64,000 bases of DNA from contig NC_086107.1 in the NCBI RefSeq assembly GCF_963921235.1, positions 50,592,001 through 50,656,000 on the forward strand, read 5' to 3'. Within the stretch, counting starts at the first letter, position 1, and the number at the start of each line of letters is the position of its first letter. Of this stretch, positions 24,915 to 52,375 are shown one piece after another. Made by a program: the position numbers and the translations under genes. This DNA comes from Mobula hypostoma (Eukaryota). Under the pieces are notes generated by a model that was not told where the DNA came from, did no database searches, and saw nothing but the letters and a program-made list of their open reading frames with translations.

Positions 24915-25295
24915 TTCAACTTTGGGTTTGAAACATTATTAAGGCTGACACTTGAGTCCCATTCAGAAGTCATGCTGTATTGCCAGATCTGATATCCTTT
25001 GGCTGAAACGTTGAATTGAGTTACATTCAGCTCCAACAACTCCTTTAGTTATTAAGTTTCCCAAGGCACTATTTAAAGAACAGTAGGCAGTTTTCCCGTT
25101 GACTTGGTCAATATTTCTGCCTCAACCTGCAATGCAAAAAAAAGTAGTCGCTCACTTATCTAGTCTTTATTTGGTTGTGTGCCAAATGACTGCTTTGGTT
25201 ACCAAGATAACAAGTAATTACACAACATAGAATGTGAACTATTTTGATTTGCTTTTGTAAGATAAGGTGCTGAATAAATATAACTTGTCCTTTCC
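24915..25295 (+). mobile_element. Ancient DeuSINE-like SINE (SacSINE1/AmnSINE1-related)
   Basis: Recalled Deu-domain blocks appear in order: AGGCTGACAC, TTTGGCTGAAACGTTGAATTGAG, CCCAAGGCACTATTTAAAGAA, TTGGTCAATATTT.TGCCTCAACC, GTGTGCCAAATGACTGC, AAGGTGCT.AATAAAT. Confidence 0.6.
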
Positions 25296-26442
25296 TTGAA
25301 TTGTGGAACCTTGTGAAGGAAACGACTGGGTGCCTCAGAATATTGTAAATAATTATTACATATGATATAGAAAATAAATTATGCAATTGTCAAGGGCTGT
25401 CATCTCATTTCTCAGCTGAACATCAGACAGCCAGCTTTTGAGAATTTATGAAGGAGTTCCTTAAATGCTCCATTTGTGCTTAAGACTCAACTGATAGAAT
25501 GTCGAAAAAGGATTTATTGGGTTGAGCACAATATACTGTATATCTCTGCAAGACTGAAAGGTGTTCACATGTGCAGCTAGAATAATTCAGTGTGTTCGCT
25601 TTTTGGCAGAATCATCTTTGAAAGAAGTTTGAACTTATTGTTTCCCTAGCAAACAGTAAATGAGAATGTGGGCTTTTAGCCAAAACTGTTCTGAATACTG
25701 AAAGCTGAATGCCAAAAGTTTAAAAGTAAATGCTCTTGTTAATGCAAGATTTTCTTCTCTGCCACAGCTATACTCAAGGAAACAATTATAACAGATGAAA
25801 GCAAGTTTTTCAGCAGTACTAAGTAAAAAGAGAGATATGGGAATGTGCATGTTAAATTGAGAATAGTAATTAATCAAATTATTAATTTGCAAATGTATCA
25901 CAAAATTGATGCTGCACAATTAATGATTTTCTGGCGATGCATAAAAACAAGCCTTGAATTCATACACATACAGAATTCAAACATTGAATTACAATTAGAA
26001 TGTTAAGTGATGCACCAGTATTGGAGTGTAGGCCTTGGGTTACATTGGAGAGTGACTGCATGAAGCTGTGATTGACCCTCATTCCCAAGATGCAATACAA
26101 AGCAGAACCATCATGATCTTTCCAAGTATTCTAATGAAAGATTCTGCCCAGGTAAAACCATTCTGTCCACCAATTTTCTGTAAACAATCCAATTGATCAT
26201 GGGCTTTGCTTCTATAGTCTGACTTAAATTTCCCTTTATTAAAGAAGATTGAGCTGAGTGTCAGAATAGTAATACATCTCCACATTTCCATTGTTGAATC
26301 TATAATTCCACAAGCAACACCCATCATTACAAAAACATACAGCCATGTTCCCTGCAAGAGTTCTTGAGAAGCCCAGTCCATGGCTATCCCTACAACTTCA
26401 ACCCTACTCTCATTTAGGTAATTATCCATCACAGGAGTGTAT

Positions 26443-26628
26443 GGGGTGTCAGGGAGGGGGTAGCACCTCTGGTGGGGGAACATGTTGCGTCCTTTTCAGG
26501 GCGGTTAGTCCACCTTTGGTCCCCACCTGGCACTCAGCTCTCACCTGTGGCTCCCCGTAGCTGTTTGCTTGCGACAGCGGCCACACCCCAGGCAACGGCT
26601 TCTACAAGCCGGCTAAACCAGGTGAGGG
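26443..26628 (+). ncRNA. HDV-like self-cleaving ribozyme
   Basis: P1 GGGGTGT(26443-49)/ACACCCC(26583-89); P2 CTCTCACCTG/CAGGTGAGGG; P3 GGC/GCC; L3 TCCCCGT; GCAAC bulge; P4 CGGCTT/AAGCCG; J4/2 GCTAA with catalytic C26613. Confidence 0.8.
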
Positions 26629-26952
26629 TAGCCGACGGGTCTCAAACCCTCAGTGAGATAGGGAGTTGTCTATCCCAGCATGTGAAGACAGACTCCAGCA
26701 GATTGAGCGGACGAGACCAGTGGAAGGTCCAACGGTCAAGAAGGCGGTCTCTGCAAGCATCATGGAACACGTAGAGCATGACAAGACACAGAAGACGTCC
26801 TGGTCATCCACTGTGCCTTGTCCCATCTCCAGCCGTCTTGACTCTTGTCTTGCCTCTGGATCCAGATGGGAATTGGGAAGAGAGAGTGAGGCTGACGCTA
26901 TGCAACTCTCCCTCACTTAAATCCAAATCACGTGCTAGTCTCAACACCATCA

Positions 26953-27092
26953 AGCCAGCTGGTGGCACAGTGACATCAGCACCAGACTCCAGGAGTGAAA
27001 ATTCCCGAGTTCGAAACCAGTTGAGCCGCTCCCGGGCACAATTTCCATCCGTGCTGGGTTGAGTGTCGAGCTCGCAACTTGGCCTCGTAAAA
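26953..27092 (+). mobile_element. tRNA-derived SINE fragment nested in the ribozyme element
   Basis: A-box TGGCACAGTGA, B-box GAGTTCGAAACC and short A tail. Homologous to the head of the SINE at 43041 (shared TTTCCATCCGTGCTGGGTT). Confidence 0.75.
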
Positions 27093-27346
27093 AGTATTAA
27101 TGGTGTCGAGGTCTCCATCGATAACGATGGACGAACCTTATCCATCACAAAACTGTCAATATACAGCATTCTACACAAATTAAATACTACCAGTTATTGA
27201 AAAACCTAATTAAAAGCTGAAAATGATGGACAAATCAGCAGGTTGGCTAACTGTTCAAAGTGAGAAAAGTACCTTACCTCTCAAATTACACACATCAAAG
27301 TTGCTGGTGAACGCAGCAGGCCAAGCAGCATCTATAGGAAGAGGCG

Positions 27347-27384
27347 CAGTCGACGTTTCAGGCCGAGATCCTTAGTCAGGACTA
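27347..27384 (-). ncRNA. Minimal hammerhead ribozyme, core mutated (CTGACTA)
   Basis: Minus strand TAGTC-CTGACTA-AGGATCTCGGCCT-GAAAC-GTC-GACTG; the conserved G8 is replaced by T. Confidence 0.65.
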
Positions 27385-29497
27385 ACTGAAGGAAGAGTGA
27401 GTAAGGGATTTGAAAGCTGGAGGGGGAGGGGGAGATGCAAAATGATAGGAGAAGACAGGAGGGGGAGGGATAGAGCCGAGAGCTGGACAGGTGATAGGCA
27501 AAAGGGGATACGAGAGGATCATGGGACAGGAGGTCCGGGAAGAAAGACGGGGGGGGGGGTGACCCAGAGGATGGGCAAGAGGTATATTCAGAGGGACAGA
27601 GGGAGAAAAAGGAGAGTGAGAGAAAGAATGTGTGCATAAAAATGAGTAACAGATGGGGTACGAGGGGGAGGTGGGGCCTAGCGGAAGTTAGAGAAGTCAA
27701 TGTTCATGCCATCAGGTTGGAGGCTACCCAGACGGAATATAAGGTGTTGTTCCTCCAACCTGAGTGTGGCTTCATCTTTACAGTAGAGGAGGCCGTGTAT
27801 AGACATGTCAGAATGGGAATGGGATGTGGAATTAAAATGTGTGGCCACTGGGAGATCCTGCTTTCTCTGGCGGACACAGCATAGATGTTCAGCAAAGCGG
27901 TCTCCCAGTCTGCATCGGGTCTCACCAATATATAAAAGGCCACATCGGGAGCACCGGACGCAGTATATCACCCCAGTCGACTCACAGGTGAAGTGATGCC
28001 TCATCTGGAAGGACTGTTTGGGGCCCTGAATGGTGGTAAGGGAGGAAGTGTAAGGGCATGTGTAGCACTTGTTCCGCTTACACGGATAAGTGCCAGGAGG
28101 GAGATCAGTGGGGAGGGATTGGTGGGACGAATGGACAAGGGAGTTGTGTAGGGAGCGATCCCTGCGGAATGCAGAGGGGGGGGGAGGGAAAGATGTGCTT
28201 AGTGGTGGGATCCCGTTGGAGGTGGCGGAAGTTACGGAGAATAATATGTTGGACCCGGAGGCCGGTGGGGTGGTAGGTGAGGACCAGGGGAACCCTATTC
28301 CTAGTGGGGTGGTGGGAGGATGGAGTGAGAGCAGATGTACGTGAAATGGGGGAGATGTGTTTAAGAGCAGAGTTGATAGTGGAGGAAGGGAAGCCCCTTT
28401 CTTTAAAAAATGAAGACATCTCCCTCGTCCTAGAATGAAAAGCCTCATCCTGAGAGAGGTCTTCATTTTTTAAAGAAAGGGGCTTCCCTTCCTCCACTAT
28501 CAACTCTGCTCTTAAACGCATCTCCCCCATTTCACGTACATCTGCTCTCACTCCATCCTCCCACCACCCCACTAGGAATAGGGTTCCCCTGGTCCTCACC
28601 TACCACCCCACCGGCCTCCGGGTCCAACATATTATTCTCCGTAACTTCCGCCACCTCCAACGGGATCCCACCACTAAGCACATCTTTCCCTCCCCCCCCC
28701 CCTCTGCATTCTGCAGGGATCGCTCCCTACACAACTCCCTTGTCCATTCGTCCCCCCCATCCCTCCCCACTGATCTCCCTCCTGGCACTTATCCGTGTAA
28801 GCGGAACAAGTGCTACACATGCCCTTACACTTCCTCCCTTACCACCATTCAGGGCCCCAAACAGTCCTTCCAGGTGAGGCATCACTTCACCTGTGTGTCG
28901 ACTGGGGTGATATACTGCGTCCAGTGCTCCCGATGTGGCCTTTTATATATTGGTGAGACCCGATGCAGACTGGGAGACCGCTTTGCTGAACATCTACGCT
29001 CTGTCCACCAGAGAAAGCAGGATCTCCCAGTGGCCACACATTTTAATTCCACATCCCATTCCCATTCTGACATGTCTATCCACGGCCTCCTCTACTGTAA
29101 AGATGAAGCCACACTCAGGTTGGAGGAACAACACCTTATATTCCGTCTGGGTAGCCTCCAACCTGATGGCATGAACATTGACTTCTCTAACTTCCGCTAA
29201 GGCCCCACCTCCCCCTCGTACCCCATCTGTTACTCATTTTTATGCACACATTCTTTCTCTCACTCTCCTTTTTCTCCCTCTGTCCCTCTGAATATACCTC
29301 TTGCCCATCCTCTGGGTCACCCCCCCCCCACCTGTCTTTCTTCCCGGACCTCCTGTCCCATGATCCTCTCGTATCCCCTTTTGCCTATCACCTGTCCAGC
29401 TCTCGGCTCTATCCCTCCCCCTCCTGTCTTCTCCTATCATTTTGCATCTCCCCCTCCCCCTCCAGCTTTCAAATCCCTTACTCACTCTTCCTTCAGT

Positions 29498-29535
29498 TAG
29501 TCCTGACGAAGGGTCTCGGCCTGAAACGTCGACTG
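29498..29535 (+). ncRNA. Minimal type I hammerhead ribozyme (intact core)
   Basis: Stem I AGTC(29499-502)/GACT(29531-34); core CTGACGA 29503-09; stem II AGG/CCT; GAAA 29523-26; palindromic helix III ACGT. Predicted cleavage after GTC (C29530). Confidence 0.85.
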
Positions 29536-30064
29536 CGCCTCTTCCTATAGATGCTGCTTGGCCTGCTGCGTTCACCAGCAACTTTGATGTGTGTTGCTTG
29601 AATTTCCAGCATCTGCAGAATTCCTGTTGTTTACCTCTCAAATTTATGATTTTTGATCTGAATTGCATACTCCATTAACATCCTGCCAAGAGTTAGTGGA
29701 TGCGTTGCACGTCTATTTACAGCTCATAATAAAATTCAGAAGGTGAATTTTGGAGACCAAGAGACAACTGATTATTTCCTTTCTTATTCCATTGTTGAAA
29801 AAGGGGAGGAATCATCCTGTATATTTGCTTTAGCAGTTATTTTCCATATCTAATGCTATACTCCAAACCAATGTGTAAAAGGCTTTCCTAAGGTTAACTA
29901 AATTAAAAGGTCAGAGTGGTATTTGTACGTGATCTTACCTTCCAGAATAAAACAACACAGCTCATATCTGTAAATGTAATGAATTTGTTATGTGATTAAT
30001 CCAAGTAGACATTTCATGGAGAAACAAGCCAAAAAGACAATTGATTGTATTTTTAAAAAATTTG

Positions 30065-30225
30065 GAATGCTATTTGAGGCAGGAATATTGGTCAAGAGAG
30101 TAGGAAACATACTACTATCTCTAACTATCACCTCAGGAATTTAAAAGAAACTACGGGAGATGGGTAATTCCATTTAACATTTCAACCAAAGGACAATAGC
30201 TCTGCTATTGAGACTTAAACCACAA
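30065..30225 (-). mobile_element. Decayed DeuSINE-like fragment
   Basis: TTGAGGCAGGAATATTGGTCAAG and TTTAACATTTCAACCAAAGGAC are reverse-complement matches to blocks of 24915-25295. Confidence 0.4.
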
Positions 30226-30607
30226 GAAGAAATTTAAATTCACAAGTCATAATTTTCAGCAAAAGTTTCAGGGCCAAATACGTCATAGGTAAGGCTAAGA
30301 TGGTATTTTAAACCATCATACCGGTTTATTCTGCAGAGTGAGGAATAGTGGAAGGGTTTTTTTTACCTGAAAGAGAACAATTGGTAATTAAAAACAGACT
30401 TGTTTGATTGGCACTGCCTCATTTTGTGGCAGTTTCCAATCTTTGCCCATTAACCCTACTCAATTCACCCACCCTGAAAGCATAATAACCTTTGACTCAT
30501 GGGTAGGAGTGCTATCAATGCAATTAAACTAAGATTATTCAGTTGCTTGGAAAGTAACTTAATGTTACAATCTGCACTGTCTACTTTTGGGGAAACATTC
30601 ACTTAAT

Positions 30608-31355
30608 CAGTGGTCCCCAACCACCGGGCCGCAAAGCAGGTGCTACCGGGCCACGAGGAAATGATATGAGTCAGCTGCACCTTTCTTCATTCCCTGTCAC
30701 GCACTGTTGAACTTGAACATAGAGTTGCCAACTGTCCCGTATTGCCGGGACATCCCGTATATTGGGCTAAATTGGTTCGTCCCATAAGGGACCGCCCTTG
30801 TCTCGTAATTCCCCCGCTAAGGTAGAGCATTCCTATGAAACCATTCATGCAAAAATGGCGTAAAGTGAAGAAGCAATTACCATTAATTTATATAGGAAAA
30901 ATTTTTAAGCGTACCCAGACCCAAAAAATAACCTACCAAATCATACCAAATAACACATAAAACCTAAAATAACACTAACATATGGTAAAAGCAGGAATGA
31001 TATGATAAATACACAGCCTATATAAAGTAGAAGTAATGTATGTACAGTATAGTCGGAAAGATTAAGCCAAAACCGACTTGTGGGAAAAAAAATGGGCACG
31101 CATGCGCACACAGGTGCCCATGCAAGGCTTCATGGTCATTGTAGTCTTTCTGGGGTAAACACAAGTGTCCTGGGATTTGACTGCTACTTTTGTCCCTTAC
31201 TTGGGAGTGAGAAAGTTGGCAACCCTAACTGTAAAAGACACGTTGAGGTGACTTTAACCCTACTTGAACACCCCCCTCCCAACAAATCGGCCGGCCTGCA
31301 AGAATATTGTCAATATTAAACAGGTCCGCGGTACAGAAAAGGTTGGGCACCCCTG
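30608..31355. mobile_element. Composite hAT (Charlie-like) non-autonomous DNA transposon
   Basis: TIRs CAGTGGTCCCCAACC / GGTTGGGCACCCCTG; perfect 8-bp TSD CACTTAAT (30600-30607, 31356-31363). Confidence 0.9.
30720..31262. mobile_element. Inner hAT MITE nested in 30608-31355
   Basis: TIRs TAGAGTTGCCAAC (30720-32) / GTTGGCAACCCTA (31215-27), GTCCC subterminal repeats, and 8-bp TSD CTTGAACA at 30712-19 and 31263-70. Confidence 0.82.
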
Positions 31356-32134
31356 CACTTAATGATATACTTGTGTTTTTTAACAGACTTGGATCCAATT
31401 ACTTTTGTTCAAAGACTGATGATGTGCAATAATCCTATAATTTCCAAATTCCTTGTTAAAAATATTAACTGGCAAATGTCTTCATTGTTTTGATACAAAA
31501 TCTTTTAAATTTTATCAATGTTAAATTGGATTACTCTCCAAAATAGACACCTAATCATAACCTGTGTCATTACTACTGATGAAGAAAATAAAATAATTGC
31601 ACATCTGCCACAATATTCCCAAAGATTTTAGACCAAAGTACTTTAGGAAATTTAAAGAAATCAAGAAAGCAGTATCATAGCAGCAGCTGAAAAAAATTAA
31701 CCAACAATTAGACCATCAGTAATCTGATTATCCCTCTATTCAGTGTGGGTTGAGATCTTTCTTGCTGATGAACACAGAGCCATGTGAGATTCATAGAGGA
31801 ATTGATTTGCAAGGTAGCTCTAACTTACTGTTGGAAGCTGACTGAAGCCTCAATTTACCATTGCTGCATAATCTGTATATTCATTGTAACACATCTGCTA
31901 CTATCTTCACAAGAATTGCATTTGTCTCTCTCTCTCTCACACACACACATAAATATATCAAACATAAATATTCACCTCTATCATCTAAATAAATGCAGGC
32001 TATTGTACTAAATTTGGTGATCACTTTTCCCTGTGAAGTATCAACTCACATATGAAGTTAAAATTGTTCTGTCTAAATTACTTGTGTTGTTTTGGCTTTC
32101 ACAAGTGTGAAATTCCCTCCCTTTTTTAAAATTA

Positions 32135-34111: not shown

Positions 34112-36621
34112 TTGCTGTTGGACTCCGGCCATATTATTTGCCAAGGGAAATCTCGCATGCAATTGTGTTTGTTGTGTACATTCCTCCCTCTGCCAACCCG
34201 ATATAGGCGTGTAACATCATTTACACTGTCATAGCCAGATTATAAACCCAGCACCCGAGTGCCCTCATTACCATCTCGGGTGACTTCAACCAGGTTACCA
34301 TGGCTAGAACACTGCCCAACTTCACGCAGTATGTGAGCTGTACAACCAGAATGGAGAGGACTCTGGATTTGATGTACGCTAACGTTAAGGATGCATACAG
34401 CTCCTCTCCCCTCCCTCCACTGGGAAGGTCAGATCACAACCTGGTGCATCTAAAACCCTGCTATGTGCCTCTGGTGAAGAGTAAACCTGCAAACTCGAGG
34501 ACAGTGAGAAAATGGTCGGAGGAAGCTTATGAGGTGCTCCAGGGTTGTTTTGAGGTGACAGACTGGCAGGCACTCTGTGAGCCACATGGAGAGGATATTG
34601 ATGGGCTCACAGAGTGCATCACTGATTACATCAACTTCTGTGTGGACTGCAATGTTCCGACAAGAAATGTCCTTTGTTATTCAAATAACAAGCCATGGAT
34701 GACAAAGGACATTAAGGACATCCAGAACCCTAAAAAGAAGGCGTTTAGAGATGGAAATAGGGAGGAGCTGAGGGCAATGCAGAGTGACCTGAAAGCCAGG
34801 ATCAGGGAGGCTAAAGACAGGTACAGGAGGAAGCTTGAGTGGAAACTCCAGCAGAACAACATGAGAGAGGTCTGGAGTGGGATGAGGACCATCACTGGGT
34901 TCTGGCAAACTAGCAACAGAGGAGGTGAAGGCAGTGTGGACAGGGCCAACGAACTTAACCTGTTCTTTAACAGATTTGACATTGTGGCCCCTGCCCATCC
35001 TCCACGAGTCATCTGTTGTCGGCCCCCAACCTACACATATTCCACTCTCCCCTCCTACCCCTCCTCACAGTCCCCCACCCTGCTCTCATGACTATACCCC
35101 TTCCCCACACGAAACCACTACAGTGGGCTTCACAGCTGAAACATCTCAACCCAAGCAAGGCTGCAGGACCGGATGGTGTCAGTACCAGGGTGCTCAAAGC
35201 CTGTGCCCCTCAGCTATGTGGAGTACTTCACCATGTATTCAACCTGAGCCTGAGGCTCTGGAGGGTTCCTGTGGAACACGTCCTGCCTCTTCCCTGTGCC
35301 GAAGACGCCGCGCCCCAGCGGCCTCAAACAGACTGGAGGCGTTGACCTCCCACATCGTGAAGACCCTGGAGAGACTTGTTCTGGAGTTGCTCCGAACTAT
35401 GGTCAGGCCACACTTAGATCCTCTCCAGTTCGCCTACCAGCCCCGACTAGGAGTTGAGGATGCCATCATCTACCTGCTGAACCGTGTCTATGCCCACCTG
35501 GACAAGCCAGCGAGCACTGTGAGGGTCATGTTTTTTGACTTCTCCAGTGTGTTCAACACTTCCGCCCTGCTCTGCTGGGGGAGAAGCTGACAGAGATGCA
35601 GGTAGATGCTTCCCTGGTGTCATGGATTCTTGATTACCTGACTGGCAGACCACAGTACATGTGCTTGCAACACTGTGTGTCCGACAGAGTGATCAGCAGC
35701 ACTGGGGCTCCACAGGGGACTGTCTTGTCTCCCTTTCTCTTCACCATTTACACCTCGGACTTCAACTATTGCACAGAGTCTTGTCATCTTCAGAAGTTTT
35801 CAGATGACTCTGCCATAGTGGGATGCATCAGCAAGGGAGATGAGGCTGAGTACAGGGCTACGGTAGGAAACATTGTCACATGGTGTGAGCAGAATTCTCT
35901 GGTGGTAGACCTGAGGAGAGCTAAGGTACTGGTAACCCCTGTTTCCATTCAAGGGGTCAGTGTGGACATGGTGGAGGATTACATATACCTGAGGATACGA
36001 ATTGACAATAAATTGGACTGGTCAAAGAACACTGAGGCTGTCTACAAGAAGAGTCAGAGTTGTCTCTATTTCCTGAGGAGACTGAGGTCTTTTAACATCT
36101 GCCGGACGATGCTGAGGATGTTCTACGAGTCTGTGGTGGCCAGTGCGATCATGTTTGCTGTTGTGTACAGGGACAGCAGGCTAAGGGTAGCAGACACCAA
36201 CAGAATCAACAAGCTCATTCGTAAGGCCAGTGATGTTGTGGGGATGGAACTGGACTCTCTGATGGTGGTGTTTGAAAAGAGGATGCTGTCCAAGTTGCAT
36301 GCCATCTTGGACAATGTCTTCCATCCACTACATAATGTACTGGTCGGGCACAGGAGTACATTCAGCCAGAGACTCATTCCACCGCGATGCAACACAGAGC
36401 GTCATAGGAAGTCATTCCTGCCTGTGGCCATCAAACTTTACAACTCCTCCCTTGGAGGGTCAGACACCCTGAGCCGATAAGCTGGTCCTGGACTTATTTC
36501 CTGGCATAATTTACATATTACTATTTAATTATTTATGGTTTTATTACTATTTAATTATTTATGGTGCAACTGTAACGAAAACCAATTTCCCCCGGGATCA
36601 ATAAAGTATGACTATGACTAT
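34112..36621 (+). mobile_element. Rex1/Babar-type LINE, second copy of the family at 499-3124
   Basis: Highly similar to 575-3124. ORFs 34300-35091 and 35596-36480; same (TATGAC)n tail. Confidence 0.93.
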
Positions 36622-37417: not shown

Positions 37418-38180
37418 TATCTGACCCCCTTACTATCGAGTCCCCTATCACAACTGCCCTCCTCTTCCTTTCCCTACCCTTCTGAGCTACACGGCCGGAC
37501 TCTATGCCGGAGGCACGGCCACTGTCGCTTCCCCCAGGTAACCTGTCCCCCCCAACAGTACTCAAACAGGAGTACCAATTGTCAAGGGGCACAGCCACCG
37601 GGGTGCTCTCTATTACCTGACTCTACCCCTTCCCCCTCCTGACTGTGACCCACTTGTCTGCCTCCCGTAGCCCCGGTGTGACCACCTGCCTGTAACTCCT
37701 CTCTATCAACTCCTCACTCTCCCTGACCAGACGAAGGTCTTCGAGCTGCAGCTCCAGTTCCCTAACGCGGTCCCTTAGGAGCTGTATCTCGGTGCACCTG
37801 GTGCAGATGTAGACGTTTGGGAGGCTTGGAGACTCCAGGGCCTCTCACATCCGATACCGAGAACAACAAACTGCCCTCACAATCATACGGCCCCTCTCCT
37901 CAAATAACAACAAAAAATGAATACCAAACCTTACTCGCCTCGCCCATTTCCGCCTAAGCCCATTGAGCCGAAGCCCTTAAGCCTTCACTCTGCTCCCGGC
38001 TCACTCCACAGCCCGCAAACTACACTGCCCACTGTATGAGGCTCTGTTCCTTTTAAATCTTCTGCGCTTCACTGCCCGACGTCACACGCCTGCACAGTCC
38101 TGACTCTCTGAACGCCGATGGAAAAAAAACCGAAAAAATTCAAAAATAGCTTCCTCCGCACTCCCGCTCCGATTCTCAGA
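37418..38180 (-). mobile_element. CR1 5' UTR + ORF1 N-terminal part (up to the esterase GDS motif)
   Basis: Minus strand reads C..CT..QLLRDRVRELELQLEDL, VPLDNWYSCL and RAVVIGDSIVRGSDR. CpG-rich 5' UTR near 37900-38180. Confidence 0.8.
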
Positions 38181-39972
38181 CTTCCTTCTTTGATATGTAA
38201 GTCTCTATATACTTCCATCCCCCACCAGGAAGGTCTCAAATCTCTCCACTTCTTTTTGGATTCCAGACCGAACCACTTCCCCTCTACCACCACTCTGCTC
38301 CGTCCAGCGGAATTCGTCCTTACTCTTAATAATTTCTCATTTAGCTCCTCCCACTTCCTCCAGACGAAAGGTGTAGCCATGGGCACCCGTATGAGTCCCA
38401 GCTATGCCTGCCTTTTTGTTGGCTTTGTGGAACAATCCATGTTCCAAGCCTTTACTGGTATCTGTCCCCCACTTTTCCTTTGCTACGTAGATGACTGCAT
38501 TGGCGCTGTTTCCTGCACACTTGCTGAGCTCGTTGACTTCATTAACTTTGCCTCCAACTTTCACCCTGCCCTCAAGTTTACCTGGTCCACTTCCGACACC
38601 TCCCTCCCCTTTCTTGATCTTTCTGTCTCTATCTCTGGAGACAGCTTATCCACTGATGTCTACTATAAGCCTACGGACTCTCACAGCTATCTGGACTATT
38701 CCTCTTCCCACCCTGTCTCTTGCAAAAATGCCATCCCCTTCTCACAATTCCTCCGTATCCACCGTATCTGCTCTCAGGATGACGATTTTCATTCCAGAAC
38801 GAAGGAGACATCTTCCTTTTTTAAAGAAAGGGGCTTCCCTTCCTCCACTATCAACTTTGCTATCAAACTCATCTCTCCCAGTTCCCACACATCTGCTCTC
38901 ACCCCATCCTCCTGCCACCCCGCTAGGAATAGGGTTCCCCTTGTCCTCACCTACCACTTCCACCAGCCTTCGGATCCAACATATCATTCTCCGTAACTTC
39001 TGCCGGTTCCAACAGGATCCCACCACTAAGTACATCTTTCCCTCCAGCCCCCCAACTTTCTGCTTTGCACAGGGATCGCTCCCTACACGACTCCCTTGTC
39101 CATTTGTCCCACCAATCTCCCTCCCGGCACTTATCCTTGTAAGCGGAACAAGTGCTCCACATGCCCTTACACTTCCTCCTTCAAACTCATTCAGGGCCCC
39201 AGACAGTCCTTCCAGGTGAGGCGACACTTCACCTGTGAGGCGGCTGGGGTGATGTACTGCGTCCGGTGCTCCCGATGTGGCCTTCTATATATTGGCGAGA
39301 CCCAATGCAGGCTGGGAGACCATTTCGTTGAACACCTACACTCTGTCCGCCAGGGGAAGCAAGATCTCCCAGTGGCCACACATTTTAATTCCACATCCCA
39401 TTCCCATTCTGATATGTCTATCCACGGCCTCCTCTACTGTCAAGATGAAGCCACACTCAGGTTGGAGGAACAACACCTTATATCCTGTCTGGGTAGCCTC
39501 CAACCTGATGGCATGAACATTGACTTCTCTAACTTCCGTTAATGCCCCTCCTCCCCTTCTTACCCCATCCCTTATTTATTTTTTTTATTATTTTTTATTT
39601 CTTCCCTTTTTTTTCTCTCTCTCTTTTTTCTCCCTCTATCCCTCTCACTATAACTCCTTGCCTGCTCTCCATCCTCCAGGCTCCCCTGCCCCTTTCTTTC
39701 TCCCTAGGCTTCCCGTCCCATGATCCTTTCCCTTCTCCAGCCTTGTATCCCTTTTGCCAATCAACTTTCCAGCTCTTAGCTCCATCCCTCCCCCTCCTGT
39801 CTTCTCCTATCATTTCGGATCTCCCCCTCCCCCTCCCACATTCAAATCTCTTACTATCTCTTCTTTCAGGTAGTCTTGACGAAGGGCCTTGGCCTGAAAC
39901 GTCGACTGTACATCTTCCTCCTGTAGATGCCGCCTGGCCTGCTGCGTTTACCAGCATTTTTTGTGTGTGTTG
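38181..39972 (+). mobile_element. Penelope-like element, 5'-truncated (RT + GIY-YIG), frameshifted
   Basis: KSLYTSIPH, GVAMGTRMSPSYA, YVDD, LPFLD, YYKPTD, GVMYC..CGLLYIGET. Pyrimidine-rich 3' region with hammerhead remnant. Confidence 0.93.
39871..39908 (+). ncRNA. Minimal hammerhead ribozyme, core variant (TTGACGA)
   Basis: TAGTC-TTGACGA-AGGGCCTTGGCCT-GAAAC-GTC-GACTG; C3 changed to T. Confidence 0.65.
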
Positions 39973-42900
39973 CCAGGATAGCGTCTTGCCTCCCGGGTGC
40001 GAGGGTCCAGGATGTCTCTGAGATGTTGGAGAATATTCTTGAAGGGGAAAGTGATCAGCCAGAGGCTGTGATACATATTGGTACCAATGACATGGGCAGG
40101 GGAGGGGTAGAGGTCCTGTGCAGTAAACTTGGGGAGTTAGGCAGGAAGCTGAAGAGCAGGACCTCCAAGGTGGTTATCTGTAGATTACCTCCAGTTCAAT
40201 AAGCTAGGAAAGGTCAGAACAGGAAGACAGCACAGATGAATGAGTGGCTGAGATGGTGGAGGAGCAAGGTTTCAAGTTCTTGGATCATTGGAACCTTTTC
40301 TGTGGCCTGTACAAGTGGGACAGGTTGCATCTGGACCGGAAGGGAGCCAATATCCTGGGAGGGTGGTTTGCCTCCTTCCTGTTTCAGTAATGGCCACATG
40401 ATAACGTTGTGACCATTACAGAGATTTGAATGTCTCAGGGGCAGGAATGGCTGCAAAGTGTGCCAAGTTTTATATGTTTCAAAAAGGACAGGGAGGGAGG
40501 CAATAGGAGTGGGGACATGGCATTGCTAATCAGGGATAGTATCATGGCTGCAGAAAGAGAGGAAGTCATGGAGGGTTTGTCTACTGAGTCAGTGTGGGTG
40601 GAAGTCAGTAACAGGAAGGGGGCAATAACCCTATGGGGTGTTTTTATAGACCCCCCAGTAGCACCAGTGACATCGAGAAGCAGACAGGGAGGCAGATTCT
40701 GGAACAGTGGAATAATAAGAGGGTTGATGTGATGGGTTGTTTTAATTTTCCTAAAATTGACCAGCATCCCCTTCCAAGCAAGGGGTTTAGATAGGTTGGA
40801 GTTGTTAGGTGTGTTCAGGAAGGTTTCCTGACACAAGTGTAGATAAGCTAGAAGGGAGACTGTACTTGATCTGGTATTGGGAATTGAACCTGGTCAGGTG
40901 TCAGAATTCTCAGTGAAAGAGCACTTTGGAGGTAGTGATCACAACTCTATTTCCTTTACCATAGTACCGGAGAGGGATAGGAGCAGACAATTTGGGAGAA
41001 TATTTAATTGGGGTACAGGAAATATGATGCTATTAGGCAGAAACTTGGGAGCATTAATTGAGAGCAGATGTTCTCAGGGAAATGCACGGCAGAAATGTGG
41101 CAAATGTTCAGGGAACATCTGCGTGGTATTCTGCATATGTATGTTCCATTGAGGCAGGGAAATGATGGTAAAGTAAAAGAACTATGGTGTACAAAAGATG
41201 TAGAAAACCTAGTTAAGAAGAAGAGAAAAGCTTGCGAAAGGATCAAAAAACTAGGTGCTGTGAGAGCTCTAGGAAAATACAAGGTTACCAGGAAGGAGCT
41301 TAAGAATGAAATTAGGAGAGCTAGAAGAGGCCATGAGAAGGCCTTGGTGAGCAGAATTAAGGAAAACCCCAAGGCATTCTAAAAGTATGTGAAGAGCAAG
41401 AGGATGAGCCATGTGAGAATAGGATCAATCAGGAGTGAGAATAGAAATGTGTGCATGGAGCCAGAGGAGGCAGCGAAGGTACTTAATGAATACTTTACTT
41501 CAGTATTCACCAGGGAAAATGACCTTGGTAATTGCGGAGATAACTTACAGCAGACTGAAATGCTTGAGACATAAAGAAAAAAGATGTGCTGACCTTTTGA
41601 AAAGCATTTAGTTAGGTATGCCACCGGGGCCAGATGTGATATACCTCAAGCTACTGTGAGAATTGAGGGAGGGGATTGCTGAGCCTCTGGCAATGATCTT
41701 TGCATCATCAAAAGGGATGGGGGAAGTACCAGAGGATTGGAGGTTGCAAATGTTGTTCCCTTGTTCAGGAAAGGGAGTAAAGATAACCCAGGAAATTATA
41801 AACCAGTGAGCCTTATTTCAGTGGTGAGTAAGTTGTTGGAGAAGATCCTGAGAGGAAGGATTTGTGAGCATTTGGAGAGACATAATCTGATTAGGGATAG
41901 TCAGCATGGCTTTGTCAAGGGCAGGTCATGCCTTATGAGCTTGTTTGAATTCTTTGAGAATGTAACAAAATACATCGATGAAGGTAGAGCAGTGGATGTA
42001 GTGTATATGGATTTCAGTAAGACATTTGATAAGGTTTCCTATGCAACACTCATTCAGAAAGTAAGGAGGCATGTGATCCAAGGAGACCTTGTTTTGTGGA
42101 TCCAGAATTGGCTTGCCCACAGAAGGCAAACGGTGGTTGTAGACGGTTTGTATTCTGTGTGGAGGATGGTGACCAGTGGTGTTCCACAGGGATCTGCCCT
42201 GGGACCCTTCCTCTTTGTGATTTTTATAAATGACCTGGATGAGGAAGTAGAAGGGTGGGTTAGTAAGTTTGCTGATGACACAAAAGTTGGGGGTGTTGTG
42301 GATAGTCTGGAAGGTTGTCAGAGGTTTCAGCAGGACATCAATAGGATGGGGAACTGGGCTGAGAAGTGGCAGATGGAGTTTGACCCAGATAAGTGTGAAG
42401 TAGTCAAATGTGAAGACAGAATATAATATTAATGATAAGACTCTTGGCAGTACGGAGGATCAGGAGATCTTGGGGTCCATGTCCATAGGCACTCAAAGCT
42501 GCTGTACAGGTTGACAGTGTTGTTAAGAAGGCGTATGGTGTGTTGGCCTTCATCAACCATGGGTTTGAGCTCAAGAGCCATGAGGTAATGCTACAGCTAT
42601 TGAAGACCTTATTTAGACCCCACCTGGAGTACTGTGTTCAGTTCTGGTCACCTCATTACAGGAAGGACGTGGATACTATAGAGAGTGTGCAGAGGAGATT
42701 TACAAGGATGTTGCCTGGATTGGAGAGCATGCCTTACGAGTTGGCCTTTTCGGGGATGAGAGGATGAGAGGTGAGAGGTGATCTGATAGAGGTGTATAAG
42801 GTGATGAGAGGCATTGATCATGTGGCAAGCAAGAGGCTTTTTGCCAGGGCTGAAATGGCTAACATGAAGGGACATAGTTTAAAGGTGCTTGGAAGTAGGT

Positions 42901-43447
42901 ACGGGGGGGGGAGGGGGGGATGCGGAATGTCAGAGGTAAGTTTTTCACACAGAGAGTGGTGGGTGCGTGGAATGCACTGCCGATGACAATGGTAGAGGCA
43001 GATGCAATAGGGTCTTTTAAGAGACTCTTAGATAGATACTGACCCGGCTGGTGGCGTAGTGGCATCAGTTCCGGACTTCGGAATGGGAGGTCCCGAGTTC
43101 GATTCCAGCCAGCTTCCCTCCCTGCACGCTTTCCATCCGTGCTGGGTTACGAGCTGGTGATCTCTTTGGAAGCTCACCCGGCAGAAGGCAATGGCAAACC
43201 ACTGCTGTAACTTGCTTCGCCTCATACACAATTCCTCACTATGCCAGAGAGGTGTGGAAGAAAATTGTCCGCTAACCGGAGAAACTCCAGATGCAACGTA
43301 CCTTTCCTTTCCTTTACTTGGAACTTAGAAAAATAGAGGGCTATGCAGTAGGGAAATTCTAGACAGATTCTAGAGTACGTTACATGGTTGGCACAACATT
43401 GTGGGTCAAACAGCCTGTAAGGTGCTGTAGATTTCTATGTTCTATGT
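39973..43447 (+). mobile_element. CR1 LINE (ORF1 esterase C-terminal part, APE-RT ORF2, 3' UTR), decayed
   Basis: CLPGARV, VIHIGTND, GSDHN, ANVVPLFRKG, NYKPVSL, QHGFVKGRSC, YMDFSKTFDKV, GVPQGSALGP, KFADD, HLEYCVQFWSP; (TTCTATG)n tail. Confidence 0.92.
43041..43315 (+). mobile_element. tRNA-head / RTE-related SINE with (CCTTT)n tail, nested in a CR1 3' UTR
   Basis: A-box TGGCGTAGTGG, B-box GAGTTCGATTCC, RTE/Bov-A-like block GAAGGCAATGGCAAACCAC, tail ACCTTTCCTTTCCTTT. Confidence 0.8.
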
Positions 43448-49817: not shown

Positions 49818-52375
49818 GATAGACAATAGACAATAGGTGCAGGAGTAGGCCATTCGGCCCTTTGAGCCAGCATCGCCATTCACTGTGATCATGACTGATC
49901 ATCCACTATCAGTATCCAGTTCCTGCCTTATCCCCATAACCTTTGATTCCACTCTCTTTAAGAGCTATATCCATCTCTTTTTTGAAAGCATCTAGAGACT
50001 TGGCCTCCACAGCCTTCTGGGGCAGAGCATTCCATATATCCACCACTCTCTGGGTGAAAAAGTTTTTCCTCAACTCTGTTCTAAATGGCCTACCCCTAAT
50101 TCTTAAACTGTGGCCTCTGGTTCTGGATTCACCCATCAGCGGGAACATGCTTCCTGCCTGCAGCATGTCCAATCCCTTAATGATCTTAGATGTTTCAATA
50201 AGATCCCCTCTCAGCCTTCTAAATTCCAGAGTATACAAGCCTAGTCGCTCCAATCTTTTGACATATGACAGTCTCGCCATCCCGGGAATTAACCTTGTGA
50301 ACCTACGCTGCATTCCTTCAATAGCAAGAATGTCCTTCCTCAAATTTGGAGACCAAAACTGCACACAGTACTCCAGGTGTGGTCTCACCAGGGCCCTGTA
50401 CAGCTGCAGAAGGACCTTTTTGCTCTTATACTCAATTCCCCTTGTTATGAAGGCCAGCATGCCATTAGCTTTCTTCACTGCCTGCTGTACTTGCATGCTT
50501 GCTTTCAGTGACTGATGTACAAGAACACCTAGATCTCGTTGTGCTTCCCCTTTTCCTAACTTGACTTCATTTAGATAATAATCTGCCTTCCCGTTCTTAC
50601 CACCAAAGTGGATAACCTCACATTTATCCACATTAAACTGCATCCGCCATGCATCTGCCCACTCACCCAGCCTGTCCAAGTCACCCTGCATTCTTATAAC
50701 ATCCTCCTCACATTCCACACTGCCACCCAGCTTTGTGTCATCGGCAAATCTGCTAATGTTGCTTTTAATTCCCTCATATAAATCATTAATATATATTGTA
50801 AACAGCTGCGGTCCCAGCACTGAACCCTGCGGTACCCCACTGGTCACCGCCTGCCATTCTAAAAGAGACCCGTTAATCGCTATTCTGTTTTCTGTCAGCC
50901 AGCCAATTTTCAATCCATGTCAGTACTCTGCCCCCAATACCATGTGCCCTAATTTTGCCCACTAATCTCCTATGTGGGACTTTAACAAAGGCTTTCTGAA
51001 AGTCCAGGTACACTACATCCACTGGATCTCCCTTGTCCATTTTCATAGTTACGTCCTCAAAAAATCCCACAAGATCAGTCAAGCACGATTTCCCCTTCGT
51101 AAATCCATGCTGACTCGGACCAATCCTGTTACTACTATGTGCCGTAATTTCATCTTTTATAATTGACTCCAGCATCTTTCCCACCACTGATGTCAGGCCA
51201 ACCTGTCTATAATTCCCTGTTTTCTCTCTTCCTCCCTTCTTGAAGAGGGGGACAACATTAGCCACCCTCCAATCCACAGGAACTGATCCTGAATCTATAG
51301 AACATTGGAAAATAATTACCAATGCGTCCACGATTTCTAAAGCCACCTCCTTAAGTACACTGGGATGCAGACCATCAGGTCCCGGGGACTTATCAGCCTT
51401 CAGACCCAACAGCCTATCCAACACCATTTCCTACCTAATATAAATTTCCTTCAATTCATCTATTACCCTAGGTCCTTTGGCCATTATTACATCTGGGAGA
51501 TCATTTGTGTCTTCCCTAGTGAAGACAGATCCAAAGTACCTATTCAACTCGTCTGCCATTTCCTTGTTCCCCATAATAAATTCATCCGCTTCTGCCTTCA
51601 AGGGCCTAATTTTGGTCTTAACTATTTTTTTTCTTTTCACATACCTAAAGAAGCTTTTACCATCCTCCTTTATATTCTTGGCTAGTTTACCTTCGTACCT
51701 CATTTTTTCTCCATGTATTGCCTTTTTAGTTACCTTCTGTTGCTCTTTAAAAGTTTCCCAATCCTCCGACTTCCCACTCGTCTTTGCTATGTTATACTTC
51801 ATCTCTTTTATTTTTATACTGTCCATTACTTCCCTTGTCAGCCACAGCCTCCCCTTACTCCCCTTAGGATCTTTCTTCCTCTTTGGAACAAACTGACCCT
51901 GCACCTTCCGCGTTATTCCCAGAAACACTTGCCATTGCTGTTCCACTGTCATCCCTGCTAGGGTATTGTTCCATTGAACTTTGGCCAGCTCCTCCCTCAT
52001 AGCACTATAGTTCCCTTTGTTCAACTGTAATACTGACACTTCCGAGTTTCCCTTCTCCCTCTCAAATTGCAGATTAAGACTTATCATATTATGGTCACTA
52101 CCTCCTAATGGCTCCTTTACCTTGAGGTCTCTGATCAAATCCGGTTCATTGTACAACACTAAATCTAGAATTGCGTTCTCTCTGGTAGGCTCCAGTACAA
52201 GCTGTTCTAAGAATCCATCTCGGAGGGACTCCACAAACTCCCCTTCTTGGGTCCAGTACCAACCTGATTCCTCCAGTCTATCTGCATGTTGAAGCTCCCC
52301 CATAACAACTGTAGCATTACCTTTGCGACATGCCAATTTTAACTCTTGATTCAACTTACACCCTACATCCAGACT
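49818..52375 (-). mobile_element. CR1 LINE, 5'-truncated, relatively young (APE part + RT)
   Basis: ORFs 51431-52354 (LGGSDHN), 50873-51427 (SPGPDGLHP, YLDFQKAF) and 49909-50913 (GVPQGSVLGP, FADD); (ATTGTCT)n tail. Confidence 0.95.

Follow-up and report, generated by a model that had tools for sequence, protein, structure and literature searches.

A 64,000-nucleotide stretch of the Mobula hypostoma genome (the window; positions 50,592,001 to 50,656,000 of contig NC_086107.1, assembly GCF_963921235.1, forward strand) carries an insert at positions 26434-27137, numbered like all positions below from the first nucleotide of the window. The insert is quite probably an old copy of a very abundant non-autonomous retroelement without long terminal repeats (a non-LTR element), and the first ~198 nt of the family are predicted to form a self-cleaving ribozyme of the hepatitis delta virus (HDV) type. 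An HDV-like ribozyme head had been proposed in a sequence-only reading of the window. The G that the family carries at 26590, the conservation of the catalytic C and of the P1.1 partners, and the covarying helices agree with that proposal.

Two perfect 12-bp copies of TTATCCATCACA enclose the 704 bp of the insert, which has a GC content of 55% against 41% for the whole window and whose longest open reading frame (ORF; 124 amino acids) has no signs of coding. These results bear out the earlier description of a 704-bp non-coding insert inside a perfect 12-bp target-site duplication (TSD). Public contigs were placed on the locus at 80% likeness, and the organisms were given letter codes. The insert gathers 25,000-32,000 contigs, with a summed word depth of ~10^5 (DNA of three coded organisms plus RNA); the single-copy flanks have a depth of about 6 (run X1). 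Word depth does not equal copy number, as the tool itself warns, and taken only as an order of magnitude it suggests a family of roughly 10^4 copies or more. At least nine coded organisms have runs that contain exact 31-mers from the stretch of the ribozyme. The TSDs, the very high copy number and the occurrence in several species are in keeping with a repeated non-coding family resembling a short interspersed nuclear element (SINE), as had been read from the single copy.

Predicted fold of the element head

A core-pattern scan of the metagenome collection found two contigs of NCBI GCA_012271395.1, WLWI01029589.1 and WLWI01056178.1 (L001 and L002), with modules homologous to the head; the same pattern had no match in the viral contigs and genome contigs collections. 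The proposed fold, with the ends of the module set by the homology with L002, is as follows.

26434-26631, + strand: predicted HDV-like ribozyme module, bounded by homology with L002:1795-1991 (75% identity)
26434-26440, + strand: proposed P1 5' strand, GGAGTGT here and GGGGTGT in the family and L002; cleavage is proposed 5' of 26434
26441-26537, + strand: J1/2, a 97-nt rod-like hairpin; its closing stem 26444-53/26526-35 contains the second GGGGTGT repeat
26538-26547, + strand: P2 5' strand CTCTCACCTG, pairing with 26619-28
26549-26551, + strand: P3 5' strand GGC, pairing with GCC 26580-82
26552-26579, + strand: L3 UCCCCGUA, then hairpin 26560-78, then G79; the equivalents of U20/C21/C22/G25 are 26552/53/54/57
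26580-26582, + strand: P3 3' strand GCC, abutting the P1 3' strand
26583-26589, + strand: P1 3' strand ACACCCC; 26589 is T in subfamily 2 (G.U closing pair)
26590-26591, + strand: P1.1 3' side, AG in the window copy and GG in the family
26596-601/26606-11, + strand: P4 hairpin CGGCTT/AAGCCG, 6 bp plus a tetraloop; two pairs are compensated
26612-26618, + strand: J4/2 GCUAAAC, candidate catalytic C at 26613
26619-26628, + strand: P2 3' strand CAGGTGAGGG, 10 bp with one G.U

Every helix named in the sequence-only reading is present, namely GGGGTGT 26443-49 facing ACACCCC 26583-89, P2, P3 and P4, together with L3 and J4/2. The motifs AGGCAAC, GCTAAA and TCCCCGT (L3) lie at 26590-96, 26612-17 and 26552-58, respectively. 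The layout around P3 was revised, as the earlier P3 and J3/1 assignment leaves 20 nt between P3 and P1. It was dropped for a layout with a hairpin in L3 and P3 at 26549-51/26580-82, in which the 3' strands of P3 and P1 adjoin, as they do in every ribozyme of the HDV type. With the revised layout the helices follow the order of the nested double pseudoknot, P1-J1/2-P2-P3-L3-P3'-P1'-P1.1-P4-J4/2-P2'. The L3 part of the fold is proposed to consist of UCCNNGUA and an extra hairpin in its 3' part, and P1.1 is proposed to pair C53 and C54 of L3 with G91 and G90 (single residues being given by the last two digits of their positions). The nested minimum-free-energy folds of both homologues independently contain the J1/2 rod, P2 (11 bp), hairpin 26560-78 and P4. 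The same folds leave the first GGGGUGU and ACACCCC unpaired, free to pair together.

The helix order, the L3 consensus U-C-C-N-C-G, the GG of P1.1 and the J4/2 consensus G-C-N-A-A are shared with the genomic HDV ribozyme, as is, in subfamily 1 alone, the G-C-A-A-C linker. Unlike genomic HDV, subfamily 1 closes P1 with a G-C pair, and the module has a long, structured J1/2 rod and a hairpin in L3. The G-CAA-C bulge, for which the earlier reading had drawn a parallel with genomic HDV, stands for subfamily 1; the linker is not conserved in the relatives, which have UACA or CAAA instead.

Conservation and covariation within the family

A family majority of G at 26590 had been predicted, and G is indeed found there in 83-92% of depth in organisms A, B and C (89%, 97% and 100% in A, F and K). 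The GG of P1.1 is present in the family majority, L001 and L002. In the L3 of the copies in contigs, 26553 has no variants of at least 7% and 26554 is nearly invariant, and the neighbouring positions 26555/56 vary in 13-50% (CC to AA in 13%; C to T at 26556 in up to 36-50%). The catalytic C had been assigned to 26613, where the C-N-A-A context is found and C>G amounts to less than 0.03% of depth in organisms A and F; the C is identical in L001 and L002. The invariant letters are those that the HDV core needs, that is, the U, C, C and G of L3, the GG after P1 and the C-N-A-A of J4/2.

A second subfamily was recovered from loose contig ends, reading ...ACACCCT GG TACAC CGCTT CGAC AGGCG G GCTAAACC. 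It closes P1 with a G.U pair, as in HDV, and does not keep the GCAA linker. This subfamily shares 26511-26628, differs upstream of 26511 (loose-end consensus ...CCATTCTGGGGCAGCTCACT) and has another J1.1/4 linker; it could be the head of the autonomous long interspersed nuclear element (LINE) itself.

Helices were compared over only four independent sequence types, within which the covariation expected by the earlier reading was found in part. At the P4 pair 26597-26610, subfamily 1 has G-C, whereas subfamily 2 (on one string), L001 and L002 have C-G. The second P4 pair, 26600-26607, is U-A in subfamily 1, U.G in subfamily 2, C-G in the full L002 module and U.G in the other two homologues. In P2, the pair 26544-26622 is C-G in the window copy and U.G in L002, a single wobble step, and the L001 3' strand has an A. 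U64 and A74 of the hairpin 26560-78 are lost together in L002, where the loop is altered. J1/2, only about 65% identical between the window copy and L002, nevertheless folds alike in the two, as a rod in which a G-C pair has been exchanged for A-U and several wobble steps have occurred. Compensation was thus found in P4, P2, the L3 hairpin and the J1/2 rod; P1, P3 and P1.1 never vary.

The window copy differs from the family majority at a minimum of 20 listed positions in 26434-26952 (~4% or more). Most of these positions are A or T in the window copy and G or C in the family, as CpG decay would produce. As had been suggested, the A at 26590 would weaken the copy, with one P1.1 pair lost (AG against GG in the family). 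It is not the single weakening change, however, since G26436A in P1, also found in the organism B orthologue, is a second damaging substitution. With both substitutions, the window copy, an old and decayed one, is probably inactive. Contigs of organism B lead from the unique flank into both insert ends, with 2 and 4 differences. Because they cross both junctions, the insertion is judged to be common to organisms A and B and to predate their split.

A homologous module in a second genome

The complete module is found at L002:1795-1991, and 3' parts of it, 82-86% identical, are found at L002:1-82 and L001:1-56. The homology starts exactly at 26434. Its first 16 nt, GGGGTGTATGGGGTGT, equal the family form, from which the window copy differs only by the A at 26436. 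The homology stops a few bases past the P2 3' strand (about 26631), and the sequence beyond is unrelated.

Finding a non-coding module at 75-86% identity in a genome this distant suggests that the parent element was transferred horizontally, and the module's presence in both genomes may reflect such a transfer or a parasite-host link. A wider proposal, which we regard as doubtful, is that the head represents a new variant of the HDV fold (a hairpin in L3, and a doubled P1 strand that closes the rod or offers a second register) and that it was transferred horizontally between cartilaginous fishes and a distant animal with a compact genome, perhaps a parasite, in which it would be a ~245-nt unit just upstream of cellular genes. 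For tests of whether the parent LINE moved horizontally, the module of the unrelated animal can serve as a marker.

L001 and L002 belong to an animal genome that is compact and AT-rich. An animal-type CUL2 is encoded on L001, with no more than 42% identity to any of the animal proteins found; its gene has a short GTATGT...ACTAAC...TAG intron and lies 10 nt upstream of a CS-domain gene. About 1.9 kb separates the two ribozyme copies of L002, which have the same 47 nt behind them; the sequence after that differs (different genes).

Position of P1 and the 5' end of the element

In the family the P1 5' strand is doubled, reading GGGGTGT AT GGGGTGT at window positions 26434-26449. The sequence-only reading had placed P1 at the second repeat, 26443-49, with cleavage 5' of G26443, which begins 9 nt inside the insert. 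The second GGGGUGU is the 5' strand of the closing stem of the rod, so P1 was assigned to the first repeat. The revised P1 (26434-40/26583-89) is the more likely in this model and would set cleavage on the TSD boundary, which would also explain why the copies and the foreign homologue start at 26434. The first base of the inserted copy is the first G of a P1 strand, directly after the TSD. The 71 contigs that lose alignment before 26437, with random flank followed by GGG, have the same start, as does L002.

A ribozyme with P1 at the second repeat, cutting 5' of G26443 and leaving 26434-42 as a leader or as nucleotides added at integration, appears unlikely, although it has several observations on its side. 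In the window copy the second repeat is an intact 7-bp match. Contig depth rises mainly from about 26443, and the second repeat may be where many copies begin, or their sequence upstream of it may differ. In organism K, GGGCTGT at the second repeat coexists with 26586 C>G, which would be compensatory in this register, the two being found on separate contigs. However, an RNA cut at 26443 could not yield copies with 26434-42, and the window copy, the 71 contigs and the L002 homologue all start GGGGTGTAT GGGGTGT. Moreover, in both homologues the 5' side of the stem that closes J1/2 is made up of the second repeat. With P1 at the first repeat as the preferred assignment, both registers may still be used, giving long and short progeny. 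All 16 nt of the duplicated strand are kept in the foreign homologue though the rest of J1/2 has diverged, and the duplication may serve as a conformational switch or provide two cleavage registers.

Composite make-up of the insert

The features outside the ribozyme module are as follows.

26422-26433, + strand: left target-site duplication TTATCCATCACA, repeated exactly at 27138-27149
26632-26952, + strand: non-coding body of the element (ORF check and contig comparison)
26953-27097, + strand: nested tRNA-derived SINE with an A-rich end (contig joints 26951/2 to 27098); not in the canonical family
27098-27137, + strand: 3' tail of the element with a 6-bp hairpin at 27115-27130 and no poly(A)
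27138-27149, + strand: right target-site duplication TTATCCATCACA; an organism B contig crosses the junction

The 704 bp had been taken as one element; the contigs over the locus show a composite instead. Contig joints run from 26951/26952 directly to 27098. Loose contig ends behind 26952 read TAATGGTGTCGAGG..., the sequence found at 27098, and those behind 27093 are poly(A). Judged from these joints and loose ends, the canonical family lacks 26953-27097, and the 704 bp is a ~560-bp canonical element with a nested tRNA-derived, A-tailed SINE. The SINE piece has 76% identity to the head of another SINE at window 43044-43148, the sole match in a BLAST search of the element against the window, which held no second copy of the element. 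A B-box-like GAGTTCGAAAC lies within its tRNA-like stretch (26953-27020), and ARAGORN called no tRNA over the window. Diverged contigs (~87% identical; organism B and RNA of organism A) cross the same SINE junction, so the SINE-bearing form seems to be a sublineage rather than a private event. A DNA transposon was rejected as the nature of the insert, which lacks terminal inverted repeats and has a TSD of 12 bp.

Alternative explanations

Several results weigh against a ribozyme head. A neutral HDV-fold descriptor was used that demanded UCC..G in L3, a 3-bp P3 abutting a 7-bp P1, RG after P1, a P2 of at least 6 bp, a P4 of at least 4 bp and C-N-R-A in J4/2. With both strands of the 64-kb window covered, its one match is this site, which speaks for the head; in composition-matched random sequence it gives 0.04-0.06 matches per 64 kb. 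The motif in a single copy is only mildly beyond chance and unconvincing alone. A check with covariance models for HDV-like ribozymes, proposed in the earlier reading, gave no support, as Rfam matched no ribozyme family in window 25500-28000 or in L001 and L002 at E values up to 10; the 97-nt and 19-nt insertions together with the pseudoknots may cause this miss. With the mild chance rate and the missing Rfam match, the case rests on the family and cross-genome comparisons. In these comparisons the helices of the pseudoknot (P1, P3 and P1.1) are invariant in all sequences and have no covariation support, and in organism K the change 26600 T>C occurs without a matching change at 26607. The folding-energy z-scores (-1.2 and -1.1) are not significant, and contig depth rises only at about 26443. 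HDV-like ribozymes are not known to carry a hairpin within L3. BLAST found no autonomous LINE sharing either end of the element within the window, such as the RTE partner suggested in the earlier reading, and Pfam searches of ten long window ORFs found several LINE reverse transcriptase (RT) fragments, none linked to the element.

Some of these results can also be read as a sign that the resemblance is accidental or vestigial, the 198-nt head being a structured 5' untranslated region, a promoter or an RT-binding domain of a LINE-derived element whose 5' end comes from the transcription start. The Rfam result, a descriptor chance rate that is not negligible and the invariant core helices fit such an explanation, and the compensated helices (P4, P2, the rod and the L3 hairpin) all lie at the periphery and would be preserved in any structured RNA. 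However, the invariant letters are exactly those of the HDV core and the adjacent letters are variable; the fold had predicted the majority G at 26590; the homology of the module ends at the P2 3' end; and subfamily 2 has the G.U closing pair. A chance or vestigial resemblance is accordingly given a small probability. Far less probable still is that the whole 704-bp insert represents a single classical tRNA-derived SINE or 5'-truncated LINE with no ribozyme head. The tRNA-like stretch 26953-27020 with its B-box-like sequence, matching the SINE head at 43044-43148, is what a classical SINE would show, but it is 520 bp away from the 5' end, does not occur in the canonical family (joints 26951/2 to 27098) and gives no ARAGORN call. 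It is also the only such stretch in the element, and no tRNA-, 7SL- or 5S-derived promoter head was found at the element 5' end. A truncated LINE is contradicted by the lack of any ORF or RT remnant in the insert. A ribozyme-headed non-autonomous element thus remains the preferred explanation.

Proposed mechanism and relation to known elements

In the proposed mechanism, master copies would be transcribed inside longer transcripts, and the ribozyme would cut immediately 5' of its first G, making the first base of the element the RNA's 5' end. A LINE reverse transcriptase recognising the short hairpin-bearing 3' tail would then copy the RNA at a nicked target, giving rise to the 12-bp duplication. 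This mechanism is proposed because it is established for R2, for RTE-, R4- and L1-clade elements and for their non-autonomous derivatives (PMC3774820, PMC7761336, PMC3414825, PMC3383444).

Ribozyme-headed non-autonomous non-LTR elements are already known, as R2 SIDEs and NARTc/SIDER. The R2 SIDEs (short internally deleted elements) of Drosophila are non-coding and keep only a 5' HDV-like ribozyme and a 3' end for the LINE reverse transcriptase (PMC3414825; PMC3774820). The present family is likewise non-autonomous and non-coding, with a predicted ribozyme at the 5' end for release from a co-transcript. Unlike R2 SIDEs, which are specific to 28S rDNA and low in copy number, it is dispersed, has ordinary TSDs and occurs in roughly 10^4 copies or more in several species. 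In trypanosomatids, NARTc and L1Tc (and SIDER/RIME) carry the HDV-like ribozyme L1TcRz (PMC3383444, PMC3185411, PMC4035085). NARTc resembles the present family in being dispersed, abundant and non-autonomous with an HDV-like ribozyme in the first nucleotides, which it shares with its autonomous LINE. In contrast to L1TcRz, which is minimal (77 nt) and doubles as an internal promoter, the present module has ~198 nt, a 97-nt J1/2 rod, an L3 hairpin and an animal host. RTE, R4 and L1-clade LINEs are also described as having HDV-like ribozymes at their 5' ends (Ruminski et al. 2011, cited in PMC3774820 and PMC7761336). As in those, the cleavage site predicted here lies at the element 5' junction and would serve the 5' processing of read-through transcripts, whereas those carriers are autonomous LINEs.

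The present family would be distinguished by how many copies it has, by a 97-nt rod with a duplicate of the P1 strand in its stem and, to our knowledge, by the L3 hairpin. No retroelement with an HDV-like ribozyme from sharks or other Chondrichthyes came up in the searchable literature, in agreement with the earlier statement that no example from cartilaginous fish was known. If the predicted cleavage is true, these ribozymes would be among the most abundant self-cleaving ribozymes of any vertebrate genome, at roughly 10^4 copies or more and in at least nine coded organisms. The family would then be a vertebrate counterpart of R2 SIDEs and NARTc, with a ribozyme replacing the RNA polymerase III head in a SINE-like family. 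Search descriptors for HDV-like ribozymes would also be broadened by the L3 hairpin and the P1 strand duplication, as current Rfam models miss the module.

Neighbouring repeats in the window

The sequences at 26953-27097 and 43044-43300 are two different tRNA-derived SINEs with a common head (76% identity). The former has a short body and a poly(A) and is nested about 40 nt before the 3' end of the ribozyme element. The latter continues into a ...GGCAATGGCAAACCACTGCTG... core, which we take to be a Deu-type SINE domain. Directly downstream of the element, 27266-27400 is a repeat whose summed contig depth exceeds 10^6 in all runs and is thereby tenfold higher than for the ribozyme element; it has A-rich loose ends before 27288. 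The window is rich in LINE debris, with RVT_1 ORF fragments at 1397-2506, 35596-36480, 38118-38996, 41737-42426 and 49909-50913, one of which has an ALKBH8_N-like stretch.

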